Part shown: positions 3,239 to 41,117 of the stretch, one piece after another
Layout: every line of letters starts with the position of its first letter
Numbering within the stretch: the first letter of the stretch is position 1
Source of the DNA: Monocercomonoides exilis PA203
Taxonomy: Eukaryota; Protista; Preaxostyla
Direction: 5' to 3'
DNA: 64,000 nucleotides
Assembly (NCBI GenBank): GCA_001643675.2
Contig: LSRY02000019.1
Span: forward strand, 124,001 to 188,000
The notes under the pieces: model-generated
Told to the model about the DNA's origin: nothing
The model's input: only the letters and a program-made list of their open reading frames with translations
The model's database searches: none
Made by a program: the position numbers and the translations under genes

Positions 3239-6200
3239 CTAATATTTTAATTGAGATTTTCCCCGACTTCCCCTTCCTCTTCCTCTGCGAACTCCTCTTC
3301 CCCTCTCAAAACGGCTTGGCTCACGACTTTCCATCAATTGTTCAATTCGTGAAGCATGAGCTGTTTGATTTGCAAGTAATCCTTCAGTTTCCCTCGACAG
3401 CTCATATTCAAATTTGCTTTCAACATCCCTTAGCAAAGAACGAATAGCGAATTTCTGAAGAGGTGTGAACTGATCTTCCATTGCATCCAAAATCCCGCTT
3501 TCTTCATCGCCTTGCTGCTGCATTGCCTCGATGGATAATTCATTTTGACTTCCTGCATCGGACATTGTTTCATCAGTTGTAAGTCCTTCAACGGCAAAAG
3601 TTGGGGATGATGAAAGTGTGGGTGAAAGCTGTGGTGTAACAGAAAACGAAGGACAAGGTGAGCTCAATGCAGAGAAAGTTGGAGATGGCGAGAGATCTGG
3701 AGTTGATAGAGCAGATGGCTGTTCTCCTGTGGCTGCAAGCTGGTCGTCGTGTGAATGCTGATGCATTATAAGTCCAATTTCTGTTCCACGAAAATCGTCG
3801 TTAAAGGCAGACTGATCTCGCATCAATTCCTGCTGTGCAAGTGTCATTGCCGAGCGATCATCGTCATCTTCAGCAAGAGCCATCGCCCTTTCAACATCAA
3901 TCGCTTGTGAAGATGAAGCTGGCGAGGGTGACGAAATCGGCATCATTGCGCGCATATCACCATCTGAGCTAAAACCGCCTTGCACACTTGAAGAATCGGA
4001 CTGAGCATTTGAGAAGTCTTCAAACTCCTCAAAAGACATCACATTCACGCCAGCTGCTTTCAAAGACTGCAACTCTTCTGACGGCAATTGTGATTGACTA
4101 ATGTCACTTCCGCCTGCTGACCTTCTCGAAGACGTATTTGACTGCCTGTTGCTTTCATCCATCCCAAGAAAGTGCCTCACATCTGATGCTTTTAGCAATC
4201 CAGAATATGTGAAATTTCCTTCTCTTGTAACAGCACTTTCTATTTTACGCTTCCATTTTGCTCTTCTCAATATGTTTTCTTCCACAGTTGATTGAGAAAT
4301 AAGACGATAAACATGCACTTCTCTTGTCTGGCCAATTCTATGCGCTCTGTCTTCTGCCTGCGCATCCATTGCAGGATTCCAGTCTGAGTCATAAAAGATG
4401 ACTGTATCTGCTCCAATCAAATTCACTCCAATACCTCCTGAACGGGTTGAAAGCAGAAACAGGAATATTCTGGGCGTAGTGTTGAACAGCTCCATCAGCC
4501 TCTGTCTCTTATCAATAGGCGTTGCTCCATCCAATCGAAGATATGCATATCCCATCGAAGAAGCGAAAACTTCCAAGATATCCAGCATTTTCGACATTTG
4601 TGTGAAAATTAAGCAGCGATGACCTCCCTTTTGCAGATTTTTGAGCAAAGCAGCAAGACATTGAAGCTTTCCGCAATCATGCTGCACAAGATGAGGAGGA
4701 GGAAACGACACAGACATTTGAGCTTCTGTGATACGAAAGATCGGTATAAGTGATTCTGAACGCATTTCCGAATCGGTTGTGTGACAATTTGTCAAATGAG
4801 TTTGTGAAAGTGCATGAATTGATGGAAGCTTCAAATGGAGTGGCTTGATAATACAAGAATCATCAATTTTTGAACTCATGCTCACTTGAGAGTGGAAAGG
4901 AGAGTTTGAGGCGCTTGTATGAACATATTCTGCCTTTACAGAATTTCTTGGACTGAATGATGAGTGTGTAAATGAAGAACTAATAGAGGCAGTATTGGAA
5001 GATGGTATGTTCGTTTCATCAGCTTTCATCACAACTGTAACAGGCTTTATAATGTGAGGATTTTGAGTACGCCTTTTAGCAGACGAGGATACAACTTCAT
5101 TTAGAATAGAAAATGCTCCATCGCAATTGCAGTTCTCTGTGCAGTTGCCAAGAAAAGAATCAATTGATGAATTCATCTTTGAATTAGAATACGATCTGTA
5201 AGGATCTTTTGAATAATTTTGTTTTGGCTTCCATATCCTCCCCACTCCACCGCTAACACGCGAAATGCCATCTGTTTCTGCAGTCCATCCTCCTCCAGAA
5301 GATGCGTGCATGGTCGAAGTAATTGGATGAAGAGAGATTGGATCTGATGAGAACAGCAACGAGTTCAAGCAGTTTATTGAAAATACTTCCTTTTGAAGAG
5401 CTGACAAAGCAGAATAAGGAGGCGATTGTTCAGCAGATGGACTCTGATTGATCGATGATTTGAATGGAGAGATGTGACTTATGTTTGGAATGACTGGTGT
5501 GATTGTAATGGAATGAGGCTGGCAGACAATGCATTGAGACAAGATTGTTGAGGAATATGCTTGATGCAGATGAAATGGAAGAGCCACAAGATGTAATAAA
5601 ACATCCGAATAATCAAAAGAAGGATTGCAATTTTCTTCAACATTTGATGAAATTTCTTCACAAAACTTGTGCGGATAACGCATTCTTGAGCATACTCTTG
5701 CATGATAGTGAGCATATTGTGGATGAATGGTTTTTCCATCATGGCAAAGCAAGCATCCGCAGCAAGTTTCAAGGCGTGGGACTGATATTTGGTTGATATC
5801 TTGTTCCATTTCCCCAGAAAGGGCAGGCGTATCCTCATTCTCCCATTTACCACTGATTGTTTTTGAAAACTTGGCGATGCTTGCAATCGACAAGAGCGAA
5901 GCATCAGGCTGCATCTTTCTTTGTGGTGACGCAAGCGGATTGTTTTGCATGAAGCTGTTTGAAAGAGGCTTAATATCCACCAAGTCGTGCTGTGTTTCCA
6001 ACAGATTTGCAGTTTCGCGCTGCTCAGTCGGAGAAGCAGAAAGCGGTGAAGCAGAAGAATTCGATGGAGAATCAGCAAAGAGGCTGTCCACAGTTGATGG
6101 CGTGTGTGGTCCTTGCTGCATGGAATTCGGAGGAGTCGTCTGAAGAGAAGGAGAAGGTGGCTGTGGTGTCAGACGAATACTGAACTTTGTTTTTCCCTTT

Positions 6201-33161: not shown

Positions 33162-34577
33162 ATGATATTGGTGAAATTTGGAGTGCTCCTTCAGCTTATT
33201 TTATTATCTTCTGTGAGGAGCAATGTTATACCTACCCATCATGAAACCGATGCAATTTGTGATTTATCGCAGCCTGATCCTGAAAAATTGATCCTTTCTG
33301 CTTCTTTGCCAGAAGAGAAAAAATGGAAAATTGATGCTGCATACATTAATTTCAATGCCCATCATCTTCCAGAAATAATTTCATCAAAAACACATGAAAT
33401 CGTTGGAATCGACTTTTTGGGCGGGAAGATTCCATCCGATGATAGACATCTTGCACCTTCCGCTCCGGTTGACTTAGCTCTGTATTTTGAAAAAGCATCT
33501 GCTCCAAGTTTTGTTCCAAGCAAATCTCTTGAACTCTTGTTTGATCATTTTCCCGCTCATGAAGGAAGAAAACCAATCGTATGTAAATAAAATTAAATAA
33601 TGTTTTCTTGAAATTTTTTTTTTCAAATCATTTCTTCTTCTTCTTCTTTCTTTAATCCTTTTTTTGCACACGTTTCAATAAATGTTTATTTTATTTTATT
33701 ATTTTAGAATGCATATGTGGCAGCTTCCAATGATAAAGAAGAACAACTTTTTGAGGTGACATTTGATAATGATGATCTTTTGAGAATTCATCCAACAGAT
33801 AAAAAGAAACCATTAACAACAACAACTGAGCATAGCACTTTTAGTGAAGAGAACACGATTGTTGAATCTCACTTTGAAGATGACGCAGATGCAGCGAATA
33901 AAGAAGTTGAAGCGATTGATGAGGAGATTGATAGATTTAAAGAAGTGGCAGATAACATTCAAATCCCCCGATGTTTGATTTCAACAGACGGGGAAAGATT
34001 TTATGCTGGAGAGTGGAAAGAAGATCATTGCATATTTAAAGTTGATTCTGATGATGCATATATTGTGCATGTAGTTGAAGGTTTGTTCGAAAAATATCAC
34101 TAAAGCACTCAAATATTATTATTTCTTTTCATAGATGATGAAGAAGCAGATAATTGGGCTCAAATCGAGGAAGATGGAGACATTTATTATGTAATGTTGG
34201 ACGAGGATGAGGATGAAGAAGAAGATGATGACGATGATGAGCTTGAGGCAGAAATAAAAATGAAAAATCTTTTTGGAAACAGAAGTGAGCGAAAGAAGAA
34301 AAGATATGCAAAGAAGTTGAAGAGAAAAATGAGAAAAGTTGAAAGAAAGCAGAAAAAGTTACTTCGAAAGCAGAAAAAACTGGATAAAAAAGAAGCAAAA
34401 ATTGACAAAAAAGCTGCAAAGAAAGGAGTTGAACAAGAATTGTATAAAAAACCCCAAAGAACAGTTCTTAGACAATTCACAGCAACACCACAGCCACACC
34501 AAGAAAAATCCAAATATTCCTCTCGTTCTGCACCACCACCTCCTCCTCCATCATTAACTACCCCAAATCGAGAATAG
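33162..34577 (+). CDS. Hypothetical protein with predicted signal peptide, acidic then Lys-rich C-terminus (3 exons)
   Basis: MILVKFGVLLQLILLSSVRS looks like a signal peptide. Introns 33579-33707 (GTATGT...TTAG) and 34081-34134 (GTTTGT...ATAG) join three ORFs in frame. Confidence 0.75.
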
Positions 34578-34965: not shown

Positions 34966-37900
34966 ATGTCTTTATTGTCCCATTTGTCTCTTTCATCATC
35001 TTCGCGCTCACAGAATGTGTCTTTTAGCACACATAAGCATACAGCAAATGATTTTCGCGGAACAAATTCAGGTACTTATCATTCTGAGAGGGAAATAACT
35101 CCATATGATCAATTGAAAAAAACTGCAGGTTTGCCAAATGGATATCTCATGAAACTTTCTCTGAAATAATTTTATGCATAAAATTAAAGAAAAAATTCTT
35201 CAACAGCAATTGAGTAGTAAGACTATCAGTGAAGCAACTGTATGATGAATACATATTCGTTTTATTTTCAAATTTTATCTTTGCTAAAGCACGAAAAACT
35301 CAAAAGATCAGAAGAAAGAATAGAACACTTGGAAGGGAAAATCAAATTATTCCAATCTGATAGAGCAAAATTACAAGCCATCAACAAAGCTTGCCATCAA
35401 AAGATTATAGCTTTGGAAGATAATTTAGATGCGACAAGATCTGTTTGCAATAACCTCAATGACTTTTGCGCTCAAACGGAGAGGAAAATACAAGAATTAC
35501 AATTAAGGAGAAATGAAATGGAAAAATTCATAACTTTTTTGAGAACTGAGTTAACTAACTTAAATAAAACGCTTTCTTCGAGTAAAGAATATGAAGCAAT
35601 GCTCACTGAAGATTTGAACGCGCAAATAAAGAATGTTGCGGAGCTGACAAATGAGTTAAACAAAACAAAAGAAGAAAAATTGAAAGTTAATAGCGAACTC
35701 GTTAATACAAAATTACAATTAGGTTTCATTTAATTTCTTGACTTTTTTTATAATTATTTTGTCTTTATTTATTGGAAATTATTTGATGAAAACATATCTT
35801 TTATGCACTTTTCCTCTAATAAATTTCCTTAGAGCAAACAACTGAAGAGTATCATAAAACGCTTTCAGTATTATCCGAGACTCGTCAAAAACTTGTGATT
35901 ACTGAACAACAAAATTTGCATTTAATTGACCAATGTTCTTCACAACAAAAGGAAATAAAAGAAGCCCAAGTTTGCTAATATTTTAATAAACCGGATTTTT
36001 TTTAATATGAAATATTTATATATATAAATTTTGCAATGATAAAACAGGACTTAAACGATAGGCTATCTGTTTCATTAAAATTTGAAACAGAAAAGAATGA
36101 ACAAGCTGTGTTGAAATTATCAACATTGGAAGATGATTTAAAAAATTTGAAGGAGATTGAGAAAGCAAAAGAAATTGAGCTAGTAAACGAGAAACAAAGG
36201 TTTGACAACTTAATTTAAGTAATAGTTTTCATTTTTTTGAATTCATATTTTCTGCTTTTTTATATTTTTTCAATGAAATACTCCACAACACATAAACGAA
36301 GATGTGAATCTCTTCAATCATCTTTGACTACATTGATGGAACAAAAAATTGAATTGGAGGATAATTTGTCAAAAGAAAAAACAGAATCATCAGCGCTTCG
36401 CCAATGTAATGAGGAATTAATAAGAAATGTGGCTCAAAAGAACGAAGAACTTGCTCAATTATCACAAAAAGTGAAGCTCACTGAAGATTTGGTCAATGAA
36501 GAAAGAAAAGAGAAATCTGAAATGATTGAAGAGATCAAAACAATCAAAGACGAAGCAAACAAAATGGAGAAAATGGCACAAGAAATTCAGATAAAATGGA
36601 ATAAAACTGAGACAGAAAAGAATAAAGAAAAAGAACAACTGCAACAAAAAAATAATGCGCTTGATAAAGAAATTACGCAATTGGAAGAAAAGCTGCAAGT
36701 AATAGAAGTTTGTAAAATATAAAAATTTTTGATGTAATATTGTTAATATTTAATATTTCTCATAGAATGAAAGAACAGAACTTGAAAAATTGAATCATGG
36801 CTTAAAAGAGGAATCAAAAGAAAATTCGGAACAATTAGAACTACTCAGAAAAGAGTCGGAAAAAAGAAAAGAACTTGAAGATAAAATTGGAGAACTTGAA
36901 GCTCAATTAAGCAAAGAAACGCTTGAGAGAGAACGAATAAAACAACAATTCGATCAAGAGTTGCAAAAGAAGGTTTCATAAATATTTATAAACAAAAAGG
37001 TCTTTGCTAAAAGAAATGCATTTATTTTTATTTCGATATTTTTAGAACGCGCTTGTTTCTGCATTGGAAAAAGGCTTTAAAGAATCATCATTGTCATCGC
37101 AAAATGCACTTGAAGAATTGAAATCCGAGAAAGAAAAGTTGAATGAAGAATGGGAAAGAAAGTATGAAGAAATGGAAAATGAAGCTGAAAAAATTAAACA
37201 AGAACTCAATGAAGAAAAGCGAAAAGTTGATGAGCTTACGAAAGAAGCGATGAAAAAAAGAGAGAAAGACAAAGCTGCTGCAAAAGAGAGAGCCAAAGAA
37301 GAAGAAACAAACAAAGAGAGAGAGAAGGTCATAAATGATAGTGAGAAATGGAAAGCCGAAGCTACAAAATTAAAGAAAGAAATTGAAAAACTGAAGGAAA
37401 AAGAAAAAGTTAAAGAGGAACAAAGAGAAAAAGAGCGAGAAATTGAAAGAGAAAAAGACTTTGAATTGAGGCTTTTGCAAAAGAAGGTGAAAGATAATGG
37501 CTTTGAAGCCACTCCAAATAGGAAAAGGAAATCTGAAAATGTTGAAAAAGATACTCCATCAGACAAAGGAAAGAAAAAAAGAAAGACATCTTTAGAGGAA
37601 CCAGAGAAAGATCGAGAAAAAGGCACGAAAAGAAAGTTGAATATGCTTTCAACTGAAGAGTTTTATGATGAATCACAAATTCAAAGTGAAAATGAAAGTG
37701 AAAGTGAATATGCTCGACATTTTACTCCAAGAAAGCGAATTGGAAAAAGTCAGCAAAAGGCAACTCACATGCATTCTATACCCTCTGACTCGGTAAGTTC
37801 AGATATTCGTTCACCTTCTTCTATCACTTCGTCAAGCAAAAATCAAACAGTTGATGGCTCACGCAAGAAAAAGCTGAAGGTGAATGATGACATAAATTCG

Positions 37901-38572
37901 GAGGATATTAATCAGGAAAATGCAAGCAACGACTTTTCGCTACCTGCTCCTGTTAGCCAAAAAGGCAAGATAACTTCAACAAAAAAATCAACATCTTCAA
38001 TTTTGCCTCTTGTTCCTCAGGCTGATACGATTATTCCACATATTCAAAGACCGTCATTTGCTTCTACACTCTCAACTACCTCTTCGTTGAAAACTCCCGT
38101 AACAAAATCTCAATCCTCGTCTCATTCTTTGCAGGACTCTTCAAATGTCACATCTGGATCAACTTCGACATCAGCGTTTTTAAGTGAAATGAATAACGCT
38201 CTGTCGAAAAGGGGAAGAATAATGAGAAAAGATGGTGGAATGTCAGCAATTTTGGCTAATTCGCCTTTAAAACCATCAAATATACAACTAGCTTCATTAT
38301 CACCTTTGCAGACATCTTCTTTGGCTATCACTTTGTCTTCTTCGATGCTTCCATCTGCATCTGTTCATTCTAAATCTGTCTCTTCTTCATCATCCACTCC
38401 AAATCTTAAATCTCCTTATTCAACTCTTTCAACAAGTTCCGTTATAAAAAGTCGAAAGAAGGCAATTGGAGATATTCCCTTTTCACTCGTGCCATCAAAA
38501 TCATCTCTTTTCTCAACAAGACGGACTGATTTTGAAGATTTGATGACTTCAGACGTGTTTGCTTTTGAATAA
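34966..38572 (+). CDS. Synaptonemal complex transverse-filament protein, ZYP1/SYCP1-like (8 exons, about 1024 aa)
   Basis: Exons 34966-35128, 35190-35239, 35290-35722, 35833-35969, 36048-36199, 36302-36707, 36766-36972, 37046-38572, all GT-AG and phase-compatible. Spliced N-terminus LKKTAEKILQQQLSSKTISEATHEKLKRS...AKL...LEDNLDATRSVCNNLNDFCAQ. Long coiled coil; basic S/T-P-rich tail ending SDVFAFE. Confidence 0.75.
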
Positions 38573-38991: not shown

Positions 38992-41117
38992 TTAGCACTC
39001 TGCTTCGGGGAGAATAAACGTGCTGTCCTTTCTCATTTCAGTAAAGCTGGATGGGTACTTCAACGACCATCCATCTGCTAGCTCAATGACGCCTTTCTGC
39101 GAATCCGATGAAGCAGGCGTTGAAGATGAAGAGGATGATTGAGGTTGCTCTGATGGTGGAACAAGACTTGGGAATATCATTCCTCTTCCATGTATAGCAT
39201 CAGCTGACCTCATGACAATTTCTTCTTTCAGAGGATCTTCAAAGCAAAATTCACTAAACAGTTTTTCTGTGGCTGTTTATTAACAATTATTTATTTGAAT
39301 ATATGTGTTTAGAATTATGAAAAAAAAAAAGCACTTCAAACATGATCAATCTTCAATTTCAAACCTTTTTTATCCAGATTTGATTTGATGTCTTGAACGC
39401 GACCCAAAAAGCTCAAAACTGCGGGCTTCAATTTCTCTATCACGAGTTGGAACTTCTTCACTTTTTTCGCTGTTTTGGACGAACCTGACAAATTATCTTC
39501 CTTCTTTTCACCGTTCTCTTCTTCTTCTTCTTCTTCGATGATTAAAATCGAGCCATTTCTCTGGAAGTAGTGGAACATAACGGTTCTTGCCTTTTGGTGT
39601 GCTTGAACAAGAGCATACTTCAGGGAGACGATCATCGAGGCCAGCATCTGATAATGTGCAGCCATTGCCTCCTTCTGGCTAATAATGCCCTTTTCAAGAC
39701 AGTAAAACACGCCGTACATTCCAAACAGCTCTGCTCTCAGCTCTTCCAGCGCATTGTACTCTGATCCAATCTCTATCTCCGGGTTCACACTGCGCTTGGC
39801 CGGGTCCGTTGCTTGGCCCGTCGTGTGGCCGATTTCGTGGATCATCGAGTGGATGGTGCTTCCGATGGTAAGATGCTCCTCCAGGTCATGGAATATCTGC
39901 TTGGGGAAAAAGAGACGAGATATAAGATTCTTAGAGACCTTCTCCATGGTTGCGCCGGTGTTGACGTAAAACATGTTGACTGCCCCTAAATTCTTTTTCA
40001 GCCATTCATCGTTGGGCAAGCATTGAGCAACTGTCGTATACGGTGCCGTTGCATAATCTCCGGTCCACCTCACAACATCGACTGCACGCAAATGGAGATC
40101 TAAATCTCCTTTAATTTCCTTTCTGAAGCCATCAGATGGGGCTTCCCTTTCCATAATCGAAGCTTCTGTTCTCAGCCTTGAAACAAGTGAATCCAAAGTT
40201 GTGTTTTTCACCATTACAGAAGCAGATGGTGAACCCTTAATACTCTTCCAATCGTCCATATATACTTCAAGTGCAGTAGAAAGTACTAAATCGATCTTAT
40301 AGTCACTTTTAATCCATAGAGAATCAGCTACAAGTCGTGCTTCTTTGCTCCCAGTTTCCAATTCCAAAATCTTTGCATCCAAATACAAGCAAAAACTAAC
40401 ATTATCGCATTCTTTTCTGGCCATTCTTAATTTCTGTGCAATTGCTTGGCACTGAGTCCGATATTTTTGTTCAAAAGGAATTATTTCAATTTTCCCTTCA
40501 TTGCGTCGAATAAATGTGTTTGGCTGCTTTGCCGTCTCAGGAAGAGATTCAAATTCAGAATCGCTTAGATCTTTTGGATAATAGCATCCTTTATCGGAAA
40601 TAGTTACTAAATCAAAAAAGTAGGGTTTTAAAACATCTTGATCGAAAGTTGAAATTCCAACTTGACCTGATGATTTTTAAAAAAATATTATTCAATTATT
40701 ATAAAAAATTTTTTCTTTATAAAAAATATGTTAGAAAAGGATACTCATTATGTTCGTGCAACGGTCTGTTGGTATGTTCAGTAGATGATTTTTCTTTGGT
40801 ATTGAAGAAATAGGAGAGTTTTGCAACAAAAATATTGTTTTGTAGCTACGTAATGAAGAAAGCTCTTCCGGAGTAATATCGGGGCATTTCATCATTTTAT
40901 CAACTGATTTTAATATCATTGATGCATTTTCGTCTGACATATCAAGAAAAATTGAATTCATCAAATCAGCAGCATCGCATAAATATTTCAGTACAAGTAA
41001 TTCTTTTCCATTAAATGATGATAAATCAACTTCGCAGTTAGCAAATGCAGCATTAAATTCTTTCTCTCCTTTTTGTTGATATTGTACTCTTTCTTCGTCA
41101 CACCCAAGATTGTTCAT
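38992..41117 (-). CDS. Peptidase M49 (dipeptidyl peptidase III-like), pentapeptide HEXXH type (3 exons)
   Basis: Motifs GCYYPKDLSDSEFE, TVAQCLPND, HEIGH, NALEELRAEL. Introns 40667-40744 and 39273-39364 restore one frame. Start codon uncertain. Confidence 0.85.

Follow-up and report, generated by a model that had tools for sequence, protein, structure and literature searches.

The 64,000-nucleotide window analysed here covers positions 124001-188000 of contig 13 in the genome of the oxymonad Monocercomonoides exilis PA203 (82,301,135 bp in 101 contigs; an Oxford Nanopore Technologies (ONT) assembly, PMC8767320). On its forward strand, at 34966-38572, lies a gene for a long coiled-coil protein, a candidate transverse filament of the synaptonemal complex (SC), of the type represented by ZYP1 in plants and SYCP1 in animals. 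Joined, its eight exons give 3066 nt, or 1021 codons plus a stop, with no internal stop, and a TAA stands in frame immediately 5' of the ATG. The seven introns are all bounded by GT..AG, measure 50-110 nt, have a GC content of 15-26% and begin mostly with GTTT. The original prediction, made from the sequence by a model, had placed a 50-nt micro-exon at 35190-35239; we recovered this splice with the same coordinates and frame, and exons 1-3, once joined, read LKKTA/EKILQQQLSSKTISEAT/HEKLKRS. The peptide strings quoted in that prediction, including the DVFAFE end, are reproduced exactly by the joined exons, and its supposition that the DNA is from an oxymonad is correct. The genome holds one copy of the gene. 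We conclude that M. exilis has a genuine gene of eight exons here, present in a single copy (Table 1).

Relatives of the gene were found in other samples. A phmmer search with exon 3 against 1.84 billion proteins identified one oxymonad orthologue (P0001), and a word-based search with alignment added two further relatives (P0003 and P0004). The three orthologous contigs that carry them were compared with M. exilis: L001 (6.4 kb, 41% GC), L009 (1.0 kb, 38% GC; ENA ERZ27274625) and L010 (1.9 kb, 27% GC; Logan SRR13490893). The GC content of L010 is near the 26.6% reported for Streblomastix strix. No locus was confirmed in a scan of Joint Genome Institute (JGI) metagenomes. A homologue search with exon 8, whole or as its last 141 residues, gave no match among proteins of 280-889 aa, a size range that leaves out the 1021-aa protein itself. 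One other protein, P0002, matched exon 3 at E=2e-6; it is a 731-aa protein of Cys/Thr/Asn-rich tandem repeats, nine short stretches of which aligned with the NDF-C region, and the match was judged a compositional artefact.

The three contigs all have a first exon of 157-166 nt ending in phase 1, then a 50-nt exon, then a 433-nt exon 3, and the introns flanking the micro-exon (41-67 nt) are bounded by GT..AG in each of them. Size and phase of the micro-exon are thereby kept in three orthologues. Mean nucleotide identity is 0.70 for the micro-exon and 0.76 for the initial 180 nt of exon 3, but 0.53 and 0.58 for the introns on either side, and the differences between orthologues are distributed over codon positions 1, 2 and 3 as 98/28/244. 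Given this identity in the exons, its contrast with the introns and the codon-position pattern, the frame through the micro-exon is under purifying selection. The comparison gives strong support to the view that the micro-exon is not a chance splice.

The encoded protein has three parts. A Ser/Thr-rich head (residues 1-46) ends in TP and is followed by a rod of 623 residues (47-669), which lacks proline altogether, has heptad-positive segments throughout and is 43% charged. The tail (residues 670-1021) carries a net charge of +16, consists of Ser/Thr to 30%, and contains eight [ST]P sites and six Lys/Arg runs of at least three. Rod and tail are the long coiled coil and the basic S/T-P tail that had been predicted. 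Short head, long central coiled coil and basic C-terminal tail together form the layout of transverse filaments. The full orthologue on L001 (870-3754; seven exons, 864 aa) has the same layout with a rod of 472 residues. Filament length differs between these two oxymonads, and L001 has no counterpart of exon 7.

Conservation is uneven along the protein. Residues 41-120 are 72-78% identical to L001 and the last 21 residues 48%, whereas the rod stands at about 20% and residues 881-920 at 38%; within exon 3, identity is about 80% for the initial 60 residues and about 25% beyond them. Because identity peaks at the rod start and at the C-terminal end and falls to about 20% along the rod, selection acts on these two regions. 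In SYCP1, conservation is likewise concentrated at the self-assembly ends (PMC10588951). The C-terminal end reads …EDLMTSDVFAFE in M. exilis and …NDLFSSNVFHFP in L001, to be set beside GDLFS…DDPYAFD in Arabidopsis ZYP1A.

To compare the protein with ZYP1, we used the Arabidopsis ZYP1A and ZYP1B sequences (Q9LME2, P61430) as printed in PMC9957857, and alignment, counting and scoring were done by hand. Residues 50-127 align with ZYP1A 44-121 without a gap, at a constant N-terminal offset of 6, and 26 of the 78 positions are identical (hand count). The common runs are LK-TAEK, KLK-S-E, LE-K, AKL, LE and T---C--L, with TAEK at residues 53-56 in M. exilis and 47-50 in ZYP1A, and all four oxymonad sequences agree at 19 of the 26 identical positions. 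The ZYP1 strings given in the original prediction, together with the DPYAFD end, agree with the printed sequences.

An empirical null was obtained by sliding the 78-residue block, gapless, along the rods of this protein and of L001 and along two long coiled-coil open reading frames (ORFs) of the same genome, for a total of 2,061 placements. Identities in these placements averaged 6.0 ± 2.5 and never exceeded 15, and BLOSUM62 scores averaged -42 ± 22, the highest being 44. The ZYP1A match, which scores about 110 when summed by hand, lies 7-8 standard deviations (SD) over this coiled-coil null (z ~7.9 for identities). We conclude that the likeness to ZYP1 is well above the empirical coiled-coil background.

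The resemblance extends beyond the block. Arabidopsis ZYP1A and ZYP1B (871 and 856 aa) are near the M. exilis and L001 proteins in length, have the same short head, long rod and basic tail, and share with the oxymonad protein an acidic-aromatic C-terminal end that follows DL[FM][ST]. ZYP1 differs in having eight extra residues from DLFS to the terminal AFD and in a rod that cannot be aligned with the oxymonad rod; the oxymonad tail is also far richer in Ser/Thr than the ZYP1 tail. The PCH2-binding segment of ZYP1 (661-725; PMC9825157) has no recognisable counterpart in the oxymonad protein.

A second motif of the conserved block may point to animal SYCP1. When residues 107-146 were compared by phmmer with 177,635 distinct PDB sequences, the top match was the alpha-N-end of human SYCP1 (6F62 chain A; E=0.36, 14.5 bits). 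The alignment is gapless, from query positions 11-38 to chain positions 79-106, and rests on ATR--CN-L---CA (mammalian SYCP1 alpha-N-end, residues 101-175/206). This first rank among 177,635 sequences is not significant by E-value, yet it fell to a target specified beforehand and we regard it as supportive. With other queries, the same chain ranked 4 (L001 segment, E=1.3) or 6 and 12 (four-sequence profiles), the E-values ranging over 0.83-2.1; it was not listed when the whole of exon 3, by phmmer, or a two-sequence profile was searched against PDB. The SYCP1 string given in the original prediction matches 6F62.

Leu50 is invariant in the four orthologues and aligned with L44 of ZYP1A. Gapless extension of the 6F62 alignment places this residue on chain position 12. 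If the 109-residue chain is taken as three tag residues followed by 101-206, a numbering with which chain positions 47-55 (QRKAIQELQ) agree, Leu50 would fall on human L109, its probable counterpart. Replacement of SYCP1 L109 (mouse L106) by Glu abolishes synapsis (PMC10588951). The oxymonad protein departs from SYCP1 in the head that precedes the helix (46 aa in M. exilis, about 100 aa in SYCP1), and it matches neither the SYCP1 alpha-C-end nor the Pfam SCP-1 profile.

From these comparisons, we consider it likely that the gene encodes an SC transverse filament of the ZYP1/SYCP1 type. This is the best reading because the ZYP1 match stands above the coiled-coil null and because SYCP1 is the top PDB match of the second motif. 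Assembly mode, localisation and meiotic role would, by homology, be those of the known filaments. Two chains would pair into a parallel coiled-coil rod, the 623 proline-free residues spanning about 90 nm. The block at the rod start (residues 47-131) would correspond to the alpha-N-end of SYCP1 and ZYP1 and would join dimers head-to-head along the midline of the SC. The tail, which is basic and rich in Ser/Thr and has clusters resembling nuclear-localisation signals and a conserved acidic-aromatic end, would anchor the molecule to the chromosome axis or to DNA.

The genome offers further meiotic components. The original prediction had suggested searching the genome for other SC and axis genes. 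A Spo11 gene (TP6A_N), a Mnd1 gene and HORMA-domain genes are present. The HORMA-domain exons lie on two contigs (C47:1005934-1006615 and C5:393776-394045) and are candidates for Hop1, Mad2 or Rev7. Six-frame searches of the genome for PF05483, Cor1, SPO22, ECM11 and SYCP2_ARLD were all silent; for three of these, PF05483 included, the control genomes gave nothing either, which makes the silence uninformative. In Oxymonadida, Tromer et al. (PMC8131943) reported structures resembling the SC as well as candidates for SYCP2-3. The gene had been put forward as evidence for SC-based meiosis in a metamonad; it adds a component to such evidence, and PMC8131943 precedes it.

Several results weigh against the identification as a transverse filament. 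No search reached formal significance, the E-values for SYCP1 running from 0.36 to 2.1; a 40-column profile searched against PDB did not have SYCP1 in its list, and the unrelated P-Rex1 and NDEL1 score like SYCP1 in profile searches. Neither the exons, taken one by one, nor the four orthologous head blocks match Pfam SCP-1 (PF05483) at E<=10, and with this profile giving no match the protein is not filed under that family. The rod end (residues 514-669), compared with PDB by phmmer, gave no SYCP1 chain and no alpha-C-end likeness, and when exon 3 was compared by phmmer with 1.84 billion unnamed proteins (E<=0.001), no transverse-filament-like protein appeared and the only genuine match was the oxymonad orthologue. 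The BLOSUM62 score against ZYP1A is a hand sum. Lambda for BLOSUM62 is 0.211 at the block's own composition and 0.097 at the Lys/Glu-rich rod composition, and raw BLOSUM scores between rods were for this reason rejected as evidence. Rods of 623 and 472 residues are hard to square with reports that transverse filaments are conserved in length. Cor1, SPO22, ECM11 and SYCP2_ARLD were unseen in the six-frame search, whose sensitivity is low where introns are as numerous as in this genome. Among the genome papers searched, those on M. exilis and Preaxostyla do not discuss meiosis genes, and no sexual cycle is mentioned for M. exilis. RNA contigs cover no splice junction, start or end of the gene, and DNA carry-over is possible for them. 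The claim of a ZYP1/SYCP1-like filament has thus held in its gene model, its motifs, their equal spacing and its ZYP1 match (26 of 78 identities against a null maximum of 15), and has gone without significant E-values.

A head, a rod and a basic tail are common to many nuclear coiled-coil proteins, and the gene could encode a lineage-specific long coiled coil with another role, for instance in the spindle, the cytoskeleton or the nuclear lamina or matrix, whose likeness to ZYP1 and SYCP1 comes from chance and composition. All the Pfam and ESM Atlas matches and most of those in PDB are of this generic kind. Pfam scans of the exons and head blocks gave sub-threshold generic coiled-coil families only, none at its curated cut-off; the Atlas feature search gave generic coiled coils only; and tropomyosin, ERM helical, CENP-F and rootletin appear as sub-threshold Pfam or PDB matches through their heptad composition. 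Biased composition also inflates scores between rods, as it does for randomised SC proteins (PMC4132317), and the number of significant E-values is zero. Generic long coiled-coil proteins, on the other hand, explain neither the conserved head block nor the C-terminal motif. The ZYP1A match falls in the sole strongly conserved block, gapless over 78 residues at an offset of 6 and about 8 SD from the null; SYCP1, named beforehand, came first in PDB; and the C-terminal ends agree with ZYP1A. We therefore regard a lineage-specific coiled coil as rather unlikely.

It is quite improbable, in our estimate, that the protein is a true ZYP1/SYCP1 homologue repurposed to a vegetative, non-meiotic role. 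SC proteins provide a precedent, as relatives of SYCP2-3 were repurposed for kinetochores in kinetoplastids (PMC8131943), and the silence of the genome papers searched on a sexual cycle of M. exilis and the difference in rod length between orthologues would fit such a change. So would the RNA data: Logan contigs identical to the gene at 100% occur in four metatranscriptome runs of one study, which probably sampled non-meiotic cells. These contigs are of very low depth, however, and may reflect DNA carry-over, whereas the meiosis-specific Spo11 and Mnd1 are kept in the genome, and the parts of the protein under selection are the head-to-head block and the C-terminal end. The same contigs lie inside exons 6 and 8 only, so that RNA support for the gene model is weak, and an error in that model (an unused micro-exon, a pseudogene or two genes) has to be weighed as well. 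We consider it very improbable, since no stop interrupts the frame across the eight exons, whose splice sites are canonical, the structure of the first three exons is the same in four genomes, and substitutions show a third-position bias across the micro-exon.

If the gene encodes a ZYP1/SYCP1-type transverse filament, it bears on how such filaments are related. They are usually called analogous proteins whose sequences are not conserved between kingdoms (PMC9825157, PMC4132317). The single exception to date, the motif for N-terminal self-assembly, has been described from vertebrates and from Arabidopsis (PMC10588951); yeast Zip1, Drosophila C(3)G and the SYP proteins of C. elegans have the same head-rod-tail layout and presumed role as the oxymonad protein and lack the alpha-N-end motif (PMC10588951). 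The original prediction had presented the protein as a bridge between animal and plant filaments. Billmyre et al. 2023 had already reported the SYCP1 N-terminal motif in Arabidopsis ZYP1 (PMC10588951), and the novelty is therefore a member in a third, deeply diverging lineage, the Metamonada, rather than the bridge. The "rungs" of the meiotic chromosome zipper probably predate the split of the oxymonad, plant and animal lineages. We lean, by a narrow balance, towards a wider picture in which the alpha-N-end block marks one filament family of animals, plants and metamonads, the last eukaryotic common ancestor already built its SC from a ZYP1/SYCP1-type filament joined head-to-head, and M. exilis, a eukaryote that lacks mitochondria, has a cryptic SC-based meiosis. 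With a member in the Metamonada, the four oxymonad sequences would serve as a seed for finding filaments in other protists, and the sexual cycle of oxymonads, so far unobserved, would gain a specific marker.

Table 1. Exons and protein regions of the candidate transverse-filament gene (positions in the window)
Feature	Position	Strand	Description
Exon 1	34966..35128	+	163 nt, phase 1 at its end; carries the start codon, the 46-aa head rich in Ser/Thr and the helix start TPYDQLKKTA; upstream TAA; all four orthologues begin MS
Exon 2, micro-exon	35190..35239	+	50 nt, 17 residues of the conserved head block; AG/GT borders; same size and phase in L001, L009 and L010
Exon 3	35290..35722	+	433 nt in all four orthologues; completes the head block (to residue 131) and begins the rod
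Conserved alpha-N-end-like block, residues 47-131	35104..35469	+	Coding span, interrupted by two introns; proposed head-to-head self-assembly motif
Exon 4, rod	35833..35969	+	137 nt; GT..AG borders, open frame; L001 counterpart 158 nt with the same end phase
Exon 5, rod	36048..36199	+	152 nt; L001 counterpart likewise 152 nt
Exon 6, rod	36302..36698	+	397 nt; open frame; RNA-library contigs (100% identity) at 36375-36589
Exon 7, rod	36766..36972	+	207 nt; no counterpart in L001
Exon 8	37046..38572	+	1527 nt including the stop; rod end (to residue 669) and entire tail; open frame; RNA-library contigs at 37087-38461
Tail, residues 670-1021	37514..38569	+	Net charge +16, 30% Ser/Thr; proposed nuclear-import and chromosome-axis or DNA-binding end
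Basic patch of the tail, residues 890-911	38174..38239	+	Local identity peak versus L001 (38% over residues 881-920)
Acidic-aromatic C-terminal end …EDLMTSDVFAFE	38531..38569	+	Last 21 residues 48% identical to L001

Just upstream of the gene, at 33717-34577 (+), the window contains ORFs that carry long stretches of acidic (DE) and of basic (KR) residues, and a neighbouring gene may have its 3' part here; the one stretch of them that was scanned, 33717-34100, matched no Pfam family. On the downstream side there is no synteny with L001, as the neighbours differ. In the window, an ORF of 362 aa at 39336-40424 (-) has the zincin motif HEIGH, its sole Pfam match being MPTase-PolyVal (E=6.5e-4, below cut-off). 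In L001, the orthologue is followed at 3808-4104 (-) by a Maf-like fragment (PF02545, E=1e-10).

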